Positions 1-6,000 are shown, counted from the first letter of the stretch. The stretch is 64,000 nt of DNA from Macrostomum lignano (GCA_002269645.1 NIVC01001680.1:124001-188000); one strand, 5' to 3'. Notes: generated from the sequence alone by a model not told the origin. Numbers and translations: made by a program.

Positions 1-3000
1 ATTGGCGCGTTCGTGCTCATCAAGATGAAGGAGACTGCCGGTGCGTCATAACTGCTTTGGCCTAAAATCTTAACCTAGACTAGAGAGCATCAGCAGTAGC
101 ATTGGGCAGGCATAATCAGGAGTGTCATTTTTCAGAGCAGACTTCTTAAATTCTTTCTCTTCCAATTCGAGAGCTTCAGTTGTCCTTGACCATTTATTCC
201 ACTTGCCGCACGCTAAGGATGACAGCTAACTTACACGTACTTGCGACGCCATATATTTGCATATCGTTGGCGAATGACGCAAGTTGAACTCTCTCACTGA
301 GGCTGTGCAGACCCTGTCTAGGCAGCTCAGCTTTCATCCCTAAGATTTATTATTTTCTAAAGCCGGCAGTCTTGCTGTCATTCGCATTGCAGAAAGCTAT
401 CTCGGCACCTCAGTGAAGAACGCTGTGATCACCGTGCCAGCCTACTTTAATGATTCTCAGCGCCAGGTAAGTCTATCAGTAATTTTGCTTTCCATACTAC
501 TTGCAGCCGTATAATCAAATATGATGCTTTCATATTTTTCGTCGCTCAGGCCACAAACTGGCCAATGATGAACTAACCATTGTGACTGATGCCCATCCAC
601 CAGCCCCTGTACAGCGCTACACAGCCTTGCACCACGGCTTGCGTGTGCATCTCCCCGCCCCTCACCCTCCAACTCTAGGCCACGAAGGACGCCGGCCAGA
701 TCGCCGGCCTGAACTGCCTGCGCGTCATCAACGAGCCCACAGCTGCCGCGCTGGCCTACGGCATGGACAAAACCGAGGACAAGATCATCGCCGTGTACGA
801 CCTGGGCGGCGGCACCTTCGACATTTCCATTCTGGAGATTCAAAAGGGCGTGTTCGAAGTCAAGTCCACCAACGGCGACACCTTCTTGGGCGGCGAGGAT
901 TTCGACAACGCCCTGTTGCGCTTCTTGTCGGCTGAGTTCAAGCGCGATGTGAGTTGGAGATTCCCGAACTTCTCATCTGCGTGCTTCTCTTAGCACAGGG
1001 AACAACCAGACTTCTCTGTCGCAATAAGTTTCAGGCCTTTCAGCTTCATGTGCAACATCTGAGGCTCTGAAGTTGATGTGTTGACAGTTTAGTGCAAAAA
1101 TTAAAACTTCCACTCTCATAGATATTTTATTAGTTAAACAAGTGCTGCATCCTGAGACTGCGGTAACTTGTGTGACTTCTAGTTGGCCCTTCGCCCTTGT
1201 TTTAGTGCCTTGTTTAGAAGCATTTGATCCCTCAGTATCGCTGACTTCCGATAGTAATTGTTGAATCGCGAATTTCATTTACCCGCGCTTCTGCTTTCGT
1301 GTTAATTAAACAAGTAATTTTTTCAGTGGGACTGTTCATCTTGGCAACGAATCCACATAGCAACTGTATAGCTTTCTTAGAAACCGGCAGCCAATGGGCA
1401 GAAGTCCACATAGCAACTGTATAGCTTTCTTAGAAACCGGCAGCCAATGGGCAGAAGTCCACATAGCAACTGTATAGATTTCTTAGAAACCGGCAGCCAA
1501 TGAGCAGAAGTCCACATAGCAACTGTATAGATTTCTTAGAAACCGGCAGCCAATGGGCAGAAGTCCACATAGCAACTGTATAGCTTTCTTAGAAACCGGC
1601 AGCCAATGAGCAGAAGTCCACATAGAAACTGTATAGCTTTCTTAGAAACCGGCAGCCAATGAGCAGAAGTCCACATAGAAACTGTATAGCTTTCTTAGAA
1701 ACCGGCAGCCAATGAGCAGAAGTCCACATAGAAACTGTATAGCTTTCTTAGAAACCGGCAGCCAATGAGCAGAAGTCCACATAGAAACTGTATAGCTTTC
1801 TTAGAAACCGGCAGCCAATGAGCAGAAGTCCACATAGCAACTGTATAGATTTCTTAGAAACCGGCAGCCAATGGGCAGAAGTCCACATAGCAACTGTATA
1901 GCTTTCTTAGAAACCGGCAGCCAATGAGCAGAAGTCCACATAGAAACTGTATAGCTTTCTTAGAAACCGGCAGCCAATGAGCAGAAGTCCACATAGAAAC
2001 TGTATAGCTTTCTTAGAAACCGGCAGCCAATGAGCAGAAGTCCACATAGAAACTGTATAGCTTTCTTAGAAACCGGCAGCCAATGAGCAGAAGTCCACAT
2101 AGAAACTGTATAGCTTTCTTAGAAACCGGCAGCCAATGAGCAGAAGTCCACATAGAAACTGTATAGCTTTCTTAGAAACCGGCAGCCAATGAGCAGAAGT
2201 CCACATAGAAACTGTATAGCTTTCTTAGAAACCGGCAGCCAATGAGCAGAAGTCCACATAGAAACTGTATAGCTTTCTTAGAAACCGGCAGCCAATGGGC
2301 AGAAGTCCACATAGCAACTGTATAGCTTTCTTAGAAACCGGCAGCCAATGAGCAGAAGTCCACATAGAAACTGTATAGCTTTCTTAGAAACCGGCAGCCA
2401 ATGAGCAGAAGTCCACATAGAAACTGTATAGCTTTCTTAGAAACCGGCAGCCAATGAGCAGAAGTCCACATAGCAACTGTATAGATTTCTTAGAAACCGG
2501 CAGCCAATGGGCAGAAGTCCACATAGCAACTGTATAGCTTTCTTAGAAACCGGCAGCCAATGAGCAGAAGTCCACATAGAAACTGTATAGCTTTCTTAGA
2601 AACCGGCAGCCAATGAGCAGAAGTCCACATAGAAACTGTATAGCTTTCTTAGAAACCGGCAGCCAATGAGCAGAAGTCCACATAGAAACTGTATAGCTTT
2701 CTTAGAAACCGGCAGCCAATGAGCAGAAGTCCACATAGAAACTGTATAGCTTTCTTAGAAACCGGCAGCCAATGAGCAGAAGTCCACATAGAAACTGTAT
2801 AGCTTTCTTAGAAACCGGCAGCCAATGGGCAGAAGTCCACATAGCAACTGTATAGCTTTCTTAGAAACCGGCAGCCAATGAGCAGAAGTCCACATAGAAA
2901 CTGTATAGCTTTCTTAGAAACCGGCAGCCAATGAGCAGAAGTCCACATAGAAACTGTATAGCTTTCTTAGAAACCGGCAGCCAATGAGCAGAAGTCCACA

Positions 3001-6000
3001 TAGCAACTGTATAGATTTCTTAGAAACCGGCAGCCAATGGGCAGAAGTCCACATAGCAACTGTATAGCTTTCTTAGAAACCGGCAGCCAATGAGCAGAAG
3101 TCCACATAGAAACTGTATAGCTTTCTTAGAAACCGGCAGCCAATGAGCAGAAGTCCACATAGAAACTGTATAGCTTTCTTAGAAACCGGCAGCCAATGAG
3201 CAGAAGTCCACATAGAAACTGTATAGCTTTCTTAGAAACCGGCAGCCAATGAGCAGAAGTCCACATAGAAACTGTATAGCTTTCTTAGAAACCGGCAGCC
3301 AATGAGCAGAAGTCCACATAGCAACTGTATAGATTTCTTAGAAACCGGCAGCCAATGGGCAGAAGTCCACATAGCAACTGTATAGCTTTCTTAGAAACCG
3401 GCAGCCAATGAGCAGAAGTCCACATAGAAACTGTATAGCTTTCTTAGAAACCGGCAGCCAATGAGCAGAAGTCCACATAGAAACTGTATAGCTTTCTTAG
3501 AAACCGGCAGCCAATGGGCAGAAGTCCACATAGCAACTGTATAGCTTTCTTAGAAACCGGCAGCCAATGAGCAGAAGTCCACATAGAAACTGTATAGCTT
3601 TCTTAGAAACCGGCAGCCAATGAGCAGAAGTCCACATAGAAACTGTATAGCTTTCTTAGAAACCGGCAGCCAATGAGCAGAAGTCCACATAGCAACTGTA
3701 TAGATTTCTTAGAAACCGGCAGCCAATGGGCAGAAGTCCACATAGCAACTGTATAGCTTTCTTAGAAACCGGCAGCCAATGAGCAGAAGTCCACATAGAA
3801 ACTGTATAGCTTTCTTAGAAACCGGCAGCCAATGAGCAGAAGTCCACATAGAAACTGTATAGCTTTCTTAGAAACCGGCAGCCAATGAGCAGAAGTCCAC
3901 ATAGAAACTGTATAGCTTTCTTAGAAACCGGCAGCCAATGAGCAGAAGTCCACATAGAAACTGTATAGCTTTCTTAGAAACCGGCAGCCAATGAGCAGAA
4001 GTCCACATAGCAACTGTATAGATTTCTTAGAAACCGGCAGCCAATGGGCAGAAGTCCACATAGCAACTGTATAGCTTTCTTAGAAACCGGCAGCCAATGA
4101 GCAGAAGTCCACATAGAAACTGTATAGCTTTCTTAGAAACCGGCAGCCAATGAGCAGAAGTCCACATAGAAACTGTATAGCTTTCTTAGAAACCGGCAGC
4201 CAATGAGCAGAAGTCCACATAGAAACTGTATAGCTTTCTTAGAAACCGGCAGCCAATGAGCAGAAGTCCACATAGAAACTGTATAGCTTTCTTAGAAACC
4301 GGCAGCCAATGAGCAGAAGTCCACATAGAAACTGTATAGCTTTCTTAGAAACCGGCAGCCAATGAGCAGAAGTCCACATAGAAACTGTATAGCTTTCTTA
4401 GAAACCGGCAGCCAATGAGCAGAGGTCCACATAGAAACTGTATAGCTTTCTTAGAAACCGGCAGCCAATGAGCAGAGGTCCACATAGCAACTGTATAGCT
4501 TTCTTAGAAACCGGCAGCCAATGAGCAGAGGTCCACATAGCAACTGTATAGCTTTCTTAGAAACCGGCAGCCAATGAGCAGACGTCCACATAGCAACTGT
4601 ATAGATTTCTTAGAAACCGGCAGCCAATGAGCAGAGGTCCACATAGCAACTGTATAGCTTTCTTAGAAACCGGCAGCCAATGAGCAGACGTGATGTTATC
4701 AATACATTTTTCGTCGCTCAGGCCGGAAGCCAAAAAACTTTTCGGTCAGTGATGAGCAACATCTGCGCTGATCTGCTTGTCCAGCTGCCGTCCTTTCCAT
4801 ATCCATATTTGCATTTGTATGCATGATGACAGCTAATTCTCAAGTCCGAGACAATCTGTGCGGACAATCAATTTGACGAACTCTCTCTCTGAACTTGTTC
4901 TTTTATAATTTAGCTAATCATGCCTACTAACTATATTGCCTAGTTGCTAAGGAACTCCGAACTCCTTCATAATCCCCAGACCGGCATCGACATCACCAAG
5001 GACAACATGGCCCTGCAGCGGCTGCGCGAGGCGGCCGAGAAGGCCAAGATTGAGCTGTCTTCGTCGCTGCAGACCGACATCAACCTGCCCTACCTCACCA
5101 TGGACGCCAGCGGCCCGAAGCACATGAACCTCAAGCTGTCCCGCTCCAAGTTCGAGAGCCTGGTTGACGACCTGATCAAGCGGACGATGGCGCCCTGCGA
5201 GAAGGCCATGAAGGACGCCGAGGTGAAGAAGTCCGACATCGGCGACGTGCTGCTGGTGGGCGGCATGACCCGCATGCCGAAGGTGCAGTCCACCGTCCAG
5301 GACATGTTTGGCCGCCAGCCAAGCAAGTCTGTCAACCCGGATGAGGCTGTGGCCATTGGAGCCGCTATTCAGGTGCGCAGATTTGCGGCAGAATTCCCCT
5401 ATGCCACAATAATACACTGACATCCGTGATGACACAATACACAACCTGAATAAAGCCACCCTTTATTCTGCTGTAATCTTTGAACTCTCTCACTGAGGAT
5501 GTGCCTTCTTCAGCAATCCCTCATTGCTTATTAATTAGCAGTCCGCCTGACCGAGCCTTTGCCCAAACCATCGTCTCTGCAGGGCGGCGTTCTCGCTGGC
5601 GACGTGACCGACGTCCTGCTGCTGGACGTGACGCCCCTGTCGCTGGGCATCGAGACCCTCGGCGGCGTCTTCACCCGCCTGATCGGCCGCAACACCACCA
5701 TCCCGACCAAGAAGTCGCAGGTGTTCTCCACCGCCGCTGACGGCCAGACCCAGGTCGAGATCAAGGTGCACCAGGGCGAGCGGGAGATGGCCGCCGACAA
5801 CAAACTGCTGGGCCAGTTCAGCCTTGTGGGCATCCCGCCCGCCCCGCGCGGAGTGCCGCAGATCGAGGTGAATTTATTTTCTTTGACTAGAGTTCTCACC
5901 CTGACTCCATCAGATCCTCCACCTCTCACCCTGACTCCATCAGATCCTCCACCTCTCACCCTGACTCCATCAGATCCTCCACCTCTCACCCTGACTCCAT

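Follow-up and report, generated by a model that had tools for sequence, protein, structure and literature searches.

Animal small nucleolar RNAs (snoRNAs) of the box C/D class are encoded in sense orientation within introns of their host genes, about 70-90 nucleotides (nt) upstream of the 3' splice site. The vertebrate guide U81/Z23 (SNORD81) lies in intron 11 of GAS5 in human (PMC10743478) and in a gas5-like host in chicken, where it is listed as a '13 nt (5')' guide to A413 of 28S ribosomal RNA (rRNA) (PMC2653536). The same chicken survey places U63 in intron 11 of HSPA9, and three copies of U14 in introns 5, 6 and 8 of HSPA8 (PMC2653536). Change of snoRNA host gene with kept expression has been described as 'constrained drift' (PMC3511168). 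Here we describe the mortalin gene (HSPA9/Hsc70-5) of the flatworm Macrostomum lignano, the 3' five-sixths of which occupies positions 1-6846 (+ strand) of the window, a 64,000-nt stretch (G000:C1680:124001-188000) within a 764-Mb assembly. Three of its introns each carry a U81-like box C/D element, and we think it quite likely that these are intron-encoded box C/D snoRNA genes guiding 2'-O-methylation of 28S A390. A literature search found no paper annotating M. lignano snoRNAs.

The motif GAACTCTCTCNCTGA occurs in the window at 286-300, 4878-4892 and 5482-5496, always on the + strand and each time in a different HSPA9 intron, on the sense strand. Chance predicts 0.08 matches, and three or more were seen in none of 100 shuffled sequences. 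An earlier reading of the locus made from the sequence alone (the sequence-only reading) had reported this threefold recurrence, with a TT prefix and about 65-80 nt past a C box. The recurrence is borne out, with the prefix present only in copies 1 and 3 (284-285 and 5480-5481) and missing from copy 2; the stated distance is about right if measured to the D box, and the guide begins 48-68 nt past box C in the three copies. Counted with both boxes included, the stretch from C to D is 85, 70 and 71 nt long in copies 1, 2 and 3.

Copy 3 ('snoE', 5420-5502, + strand, intron 4) has boxes, guide and stem. Its C box GTGATGA (5426-5432) is followed by a D' CTGA (5446-5449), a 7-base-pair (bp) internal hairpin directly after it (5450-5469), the guide (5480-5491) and the D box (5493-5496). 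The perfect 6-bp terminal stem noted in the sequence-only reading is indeed there, ACATCC at 5420-5425 pairing with GGATGT at 5497-5502, and it forms in the minimum free energy (MFE) fold (z = -2.1). Copy 1 ('snoA', 208-308, + strand, intron 1) likewise has boxes, guide and stem: C box AGGATGA (216-222), a long internal hairpin (~235-283), guide (283-295), D box CTGA (297-300) and a terminal stem of 5 bp, one of them G-U (208-212 with 304-308), which also forms in the MFE fold. A kink-turn considered in the loop of its internal hairpin was dropped, as the G-A register is off the Watson-Crick register by one nucleotide. Copy 2 ('snoD', about 4817-4897, + strand) is a U81-like box C/D element near the 3' end of intron 3, with a C box ATGATGA (4823-4829), guide (4878-4888) and D box (4889-4892) and no convincing terminal stem. 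For the D' guides of the three copies, an ungapped complementarity scan against the species' own rRNA found no credible target.

The host assignment rests on the spliced translation of exons 1-40, 393-466, 679-948, 4980-5372, 5583-5867 and 6313-6846 (ending in the stop), all on the + strand. BOX15_Mlig008834g1 of M. lignano is 100% identical to the spliced product, the upstream exon part lies just before the window in G000:C1680, and the nearest relatives of this protein are annotated as mitochondrial stress-70 protein, that is mortalin/HSPA9/Hsc70-5. Every splice site of the mortalin introns in the window is GT-AG. The exon map puts the elements in intron 1 (41-392), intron 3 (949-4979) and intron 4 (5373-5582) on the + strand; anatomy and exon map thus agree with the earlier claim of three box C/D snoRNA-like elements in three HSPA9 introns.

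The end of the D box lies 92, 87 and 86 nt, and the predicted snoRNA 3' end 84, ~83 and 80 nt, from the 3' splice site in copies 1, 2 and 3. Hirose and Steitz reportedly found in 2001 that such D-box-to-3'-splice-site placement is optimal for the splicing-dependent processing of intronic C/D snoRNAs. The spacing stays within 86-92 nt even in the 4-kb intron 3, a placement that chance would hardly produce three times over. Across the 764-Mb genome, the exact 15-mer of guide and D box is joined to a C box in mortalin copies only; elsewhere it is confined to a few lone sites and to CT-rich tandem repeats on contigs C1138 and C4458. The repeat matches and two lone sites without a C box would suit an explanation in which the motif recurs by chance or derives from repeats, with no RNA function. 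We consider this extremely improbable, given the absence of three matches in any of the shuffles, the consistent sense-strand, intronic position of all three copies behind a correctly spaced C box, and their complementarity to a conserved, known methylation site, described below. Two of the lone sites read ...CACTGA (C1595:35923 and C3793:15605); both lack a C box within usable distance, and we regard them as chance.

The species' own ribosomal DNA was located in the genome, and its 18S, 5.8S and 28S were confirmed by Rfam (L007). The M. lignano 28S reads UUGAAGAGAGAGUUCAAUAGUACG, with GAGAGAGUUCAAU at 387-399, and so contains the complementary GAGAGAGUUCAA. In the ungapped complementarity scan, copy 1 forms a 13-bp duplex with 28S 387-399 (one G-U), copy 2 a perfect 11-bp duplex with 386-396 and copy 3 a perfect 12-bp duplex with 387-398. 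In every copy the partner of the guide's fifth nucleotide, counted upstream from box D, is A390, the second A of GAGAGAGUUCAA, which matches the earlier prediction of a single common A. The refuting outcome named in the sequence-only reading, a 28S free of complementarity, is therefore not what is seen. The guide meets the box as UCUCA|CUGA in copies 1 and 3 and in the Rfam SNORD81 consensus, and as UCUCU|CUGA in copy 2. We take A391 (Am391) to be the counterpart of A390 in human 28S.

These features suggest how the elements might work. The mortalin pre-mRNA would co-transcribe the snoRNAs, and debranching and exonucleolytic trimming of the spliced introns would set them free. Boxes C and D, together with the terminal stem, would fold into a kink-turn that recruits Snu13, Nop56, Nop58 and fibrillarin. 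Pairing of 28S 386-399 with the 11-13 nt of guide immediately before box D would follow, and fibrillarin would be expected to 2'-O-methylate A390, opposite the fifth guide position, the same site as that served by vertebrate U81/SNORD81.

Two further mortalin gene copies, both on contig C3695, have the same three elements in the same three introns, and aligning the window with them (paralogues 94-99% identical) gives an estimate of divergence. Other intron sequence, taken as background, shows 65 substitutions in 1017 positions (6.4%), and the exons show 1 in 182 (0.5%). Copy 1 has a single change in 101 positions (1.0%, p=0.02), located in a hairpin loop. Copy 3 has none in 81 (0%, p=0.012); its orphan D' spacer differs by one 2-nt indel, which suggests that this spacer is unconstrained. 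Copy 2, with 5 in 81 (6.2%), equals the neutral intron rate. Boxes, guide and splice-site spacing of copies 1 and 3 are intact in all three gene copies, and the divergence test, though weak, sets these two well-kept copies apart from the neutral-like copy 2. An exon-D peptide search for other Macrostomum genomic contigs returned nothing above 85% identity, and the 93%-identical hits of the host-gene search lay on contigs of ~2.4 kb, too short for introns.

Several observations weigh against reading all three elements as guide genes. The terminal stem of copy 2 has no support in the MFE fold, and both gene copies on C3695 have TGATAA in place of its C box. The C box of copy 1, AGGAUGA, has G for the conserved U at position 2, one mismatch to RUGAUGA. 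The MFE z-scores of copies 1 and 2 are unremarkable, as is usual for C/D snoRNAs, and no Rfam family was reached at the gathering threshold anywhere in the window, nothing relevant being found. Conservation is drawn from very similar paralogous gene copies only, which makes the divergence test weak, and since the gene copies also agree at every one of the 85 nt downstream of copy 1, gene conversion could mimic constraint. Expression, assembly into a ribonucleoprotein and methylation are, finally, inferred.

Taken further, such doubts would make all three elements pseudo-snoRNAs, dead remains of an old intragenic duplication that no longer yield stable RNAs, with A390 unmethylated or guided from another locus. 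Copy 2 fits this description well, combining neutral divergence with the lack of a terminal stem and, in two of the three gene copies, loss of the C box; the imperfect C box of copy 1 points the same way, and a guide placed before a degenerate D' elsewhere in the genome would escape our pattern search. However, copy 3 is canonical throughout and free of substitutions, the one change in copy 1 falls in a hairpin loop, copies 1 and 3 keep boxes, guide and spacing in three gene copies, and no other genome locus joins guide and CTGA to a C box. A wholly dead set therefore seems very unlikely to us. We favour instead guide genes for 28S A390: copies 3 and 1 are very probably working, and copy 2 is probably redundant or decaying and being lost. 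In the earlier count of three snoRNAs, copy 2 is doubtful as a functional gene. The three probably arose by duplication within the mortalin gene, as suggested by GATGACAGCTAA past the C box of copies 1 and 2 and by the 3' end CTGAGGNTGTGC common to copies 1 and 3.

The relation to SNORD81 proved less direct than the name 'U81-like' implies. A search of window positions 1-12000 with Rfam at E<=10 gave nothing relevant; weak sub-threshold matches came only from separate scans of short stretches. With lax filters, copy 1 aligns in part to SNORD81 (257-310, 18.1 bits, against a gathering threshold of 50 bits for RF00136), its guide and CUGA falling on the D' half of the model. Copies 2 and 3 gave no SNORD81 match with lax filters, their best matches being to the unrelated families snR61 (20.3 bits) and SNORD50 (17.5 bits). 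In the Rfam consensus, CAACUUGAACUCUCUCA-CUGA stands right after box C, at model positions ~20-44 of 77. SNORD81 and the flatworm copies are alike in being intronic box C/D methylation guides, one per intron, with the same antisense core UUGAACUCUCUCA directly before CUGA, in the same register and facing the same A of 28S GAGAGAGUUCAA; the flatworm RNAs are therefore predicted to be isofunctional with SNORD81, sharing core, register and adenosine. They differ in that the SNORD81 guide is a 5' element, between box C and D', whereas the flatworm guide is a 3' element abutting the terminal D box, and no similarity extends beyond boxes and guide. The hosts differ too: in the flatworm, a chaperone gene that encodes a protein and carries one copy in each of three introns; in vertebrates, the non-coding multi-snoRNA gene GAS5, or a gas5-like gene, with a single copy.

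Could the flatworm copies nevertheless be true SNORD81 orthologues by common descent, the host having changed and the guide having moved from the D' half to the D half? In copy 1, CAAGTTGAACTCTCTCACTGA agrees with the Rfam consensus CAACUUGAACUCUCUCACUGA at 20 of 21 positions, 3 of which lie past the paired region, and a C'-like element precedes the guide half, which Rfam aligns to box C. A new host would be no obstacle, as snoRNA host genes do change over time (PMC3511168). On the other hand, the guide sequence is imposed by an invariant rRNA target, so that its identity alone does not prove common descent; nothing aligns outside boxes and guide, the guide occupies the opposite half of the RNA (U81 being listed as a 5' guide; PMC2653536), and the scores are far under the Rfam threshold. 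On balance we find orthology rather unlikely. Membership of the SNORD81 family is not demonstrable, failing on score, guide position and host gene, and the label 'U81-like' is apt for the target and misplaced for the family.

RNAs of the flatworm layout are found elsewhere. A single scan of public metagenome contigs for TGATGA-N45-75-TGAACTCTCTCACTGA yielded four eukaryotic contigs (L053-L056) with snoRNAs whose guide lies directly upstream of the terminal D box. As in the flatworm copies, a C box is followed after ~45-60 nt by (C)TTGAACTCTCTCA, CTGA and a short terminal stem, and the RNA is intronic. The U81-like snoRNA in L054, L055 and L056 is intronic to a gene resembling SERBP1/HABP4 (PF04774). 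The exons on either side, read in L054 and L056, place the D-box end 80 and 75 nt, respectively, from the 3' splice site. SNORA74 (U19)-like H/ACA snoRNAs lie upstream in L053 (418-643), L055 (787-1013) and L056 (5478-5733, - strand), inside the SERBP1-like gene in the latter two; these matches are below the Rfam threshold, with E values of 1e-5 to 4e-8. The contigs differ from the flatworm locus in having a SERBP1-like host (L054-L056), one copy per gene and a SNORA74-like H/ACA snoRNA in a neighbouring intron, and they do not align with the flatworm copies outside boxes and guide. One more match (L057), in GC-rich coding sequence, was judged chance. The D-type guide to this 28S site is a real, recurring design outside vertebrates, with another host.

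Introns 2 and 3 of M. lignano HSPA9 hold two more box C/D snoRNAs that the sequence-only reading had missed. The first, snoB (521-589, + strand, intron 2 at 467-678 of the + strand), has a C box ATGATGC (521-527), an 18S guide (533-546), a D'-like CTCA (545-548), a hairpin (549-563), C' ATGATGA (565-571) and a D box (586-589) ending 89 nt before the 3' splice site; it differs from its paralogue by one substitution in 73 nt. It forms a 14-bp duplex (one G-U) with 18S 471-484, AGTGACGAAAAATA. The second, snoC (4683-4778, + strand, intron 3), has a C box GTGATGT (4690-4696), an 18S guide (4706-4718), a D'-like CTCA (4717-4720), C' GTGATGA (4749-4755) and a D box (4768-4771), and forms a 13-bp duplex (one G-U) with 18S 471-483. 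Our own C/D scan, which detected it, gives it an external stem of ~9 bp, and its fold has z = -2.8. It lies 46 nt upstream of copy 2, placing two snoRNAs in one intron, an arrangement that is unusual in animals. Both share the C box form TGATGC/TGATGT and the 5' guide ATTTTTCGTCGCT, complementary to 18S 471-484 (AGUGACGAAAAAUA). With the D'-like CTCA as register, the predicted target is 18S G477, next to C476; a shift of the degenerate D' by one nucleotide would move the predicted target to C476. From human sites and chicken numbering, we assume that this neighbouring C maps to human Cm517.

The 18S guide has counterparts in other spiralians. HSPA9 introns of Pomacea canaliculata carry the same type of C box with the 18S GACGAAAAAU guide twice (L048 ~7950-8035 and ~9585-9665), and HSPA9 of Lineus longissimus carries it once (L052 7636-7702); the Lineus copy and the second Pomacea copy share one intron position, at about residue 567. 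No Rfam family recognises these Pomacea and Lineus snoRNAs at threshold. It is thus the 18S guide, not the U81-like guide, that is a widely shared resident of HSPA9 in spiralians.

The remainder of the window offers some context. Most of intron 3 is taken up by a 53-nt unit repeated 63 times in tandem (98% matches; 1352-4688), outside the snoRNAs. The array stops directly at the C box of snoC, and its last unit supplies the 5' strand of the snoC external stem. It is ~2.2-2.5 kb shorter in both other gene copies, where copies 1 and 2 are 2108 and 2377 nt apart, versus 4592 nt here. In the 5' part of the same intron, a 56-nt block (1040-1095) bearing ATGTGC, two CTGA and TGATGT motifs is identical across the three gene copies, while its flanks show substitutions and indels; convincing rRNA complementarity was not found for it. 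Intron 5 is mostly made up, at 5894-6265, of two adjoining minisatellites (30-nt x 7 and 24-nt x 7), and no snoRNA lies in it. Beyond mortalin, arrays of a 21-nt satellite (CCACTGCATTAGAGCCCTCAC) at 7629-8137 and 9110-10043 flank a 290-residue reverse-strand open reading frame (8239-9111, - strand) with an RNase H-like motif (WIPGHAGFPGNELADSLAK) typical of non-LTR (long terminal repeat) retrotransposons, a similar fragment lying at ~12150-12640. A leucine-rich-repeat gene on the + strand (10500-13310) has exons split by satellite-rich introns and a GGGCTG-type microsatellite after its 3' end.

Our analysis adds five unannotated snoRNA genes, of a known kind, for a flatworm model organism, and predicts that the site of vertebrate 28S Am391 is methylated in Platyhelminthes as well. 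It leaves the current understanding of snoRNA biology unchanged and exemplifies two known principles: snoRNAs keep their target while the host gene, and even the architecture, changes, and intragenic snoRNA duplicates settle again and again in strongly expressed housekeeping genes such as HSPA9. For annotation, the practical point is that vertebrate-built Rfam models miss isofunctional invertebrate guides, which a check of guide and boxes against the species' own rRNA can find.

The closest parallels to the arrangement in M. lignano come from other Hsp70-family genes. The hosts named in the sequence-only reading are borne out: SNORD63 resides in HSPA9 in mammals and in chicken, and U81 in GAS5 or a gas5-like gene in vertebrates (PMC2653536, PMC10743478). 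Our Rfam searches found SNORD63 in two introns of mouse Hspa9, with 91.5 and 52.4 bits. In Lineus longissimus, HSPA9 (L052 3318-7313) has at least eight intronic C/D snoRNAs, including six or seven SNORD33/32/34-like copies, of which only three reach the Rfam threshold and whose guides address 18S ~1281 and 28S ~2200 (M. lignano numbering). U14 (SNORD14) in hsc70/HSPA8 resembles the flatworm case in having several paralogous copies of a single C/D snoRNA distributed over separate introns of a strongly expressed gene of the Hsp70 family, and differs in that U14 targets 18S and has a processing role, and in that its host is the cytosolic HSPA8 rather than the mitochondrial HSPA9. With the mouse, Lineus and chicken HSPA8 cases in hand, multi-copy hosting by an Hsp70-family gene is normal; mortalin as a multi-snoRNA host is upheld, the contrast with human having been overstated, and what differs is the cargo. 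The AACTCTCTC guide was absent from the intron sense strand in the HSPA9 loci of Mesocestoides, Pomacea, Capitella, Owenia, Lineus and mouse, and the U81-type guide as amplified cargo is Macrostomum-specific among the species sampled.

SNORD63 (RF00154) shares the orthologous host HSPA9 with the flatworm elements, but has its target in the 3' part of 28S, has no sequence similarity to the U81-like copies and occupies introns at residues ~353 and ~429 (query numbering) as against 136, 251 and 382. Its C box AUGAUGC resembles those of snoB, snoC and the 18S-guide snoRNAs of Pomacea and Lineus, and together with the common host this makes a distant homology between the 18S-guide snoRNAs and SNORD63 conceivable. 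A joint reading of these systems, which we put forward tentatively and as somewhat short of an even bet, would have two unrelated guide layouts for the same 28S A, upstream of D' in SNORD81 and upstream of D in the flatworm and SERBP1-hosted RNAs, captured independently by different backbones. HSPA9 would at the same time be a recurrent 'landing pad' for lineage-specific multi-copy cargo, with SNORD63 in vertebrates, SNORD33-like copies in the nemertean and U81-like copies in Macrostomum, beside one old resident, the 18S GACGAAAAAU guide of flatworm, snail and nemertean.

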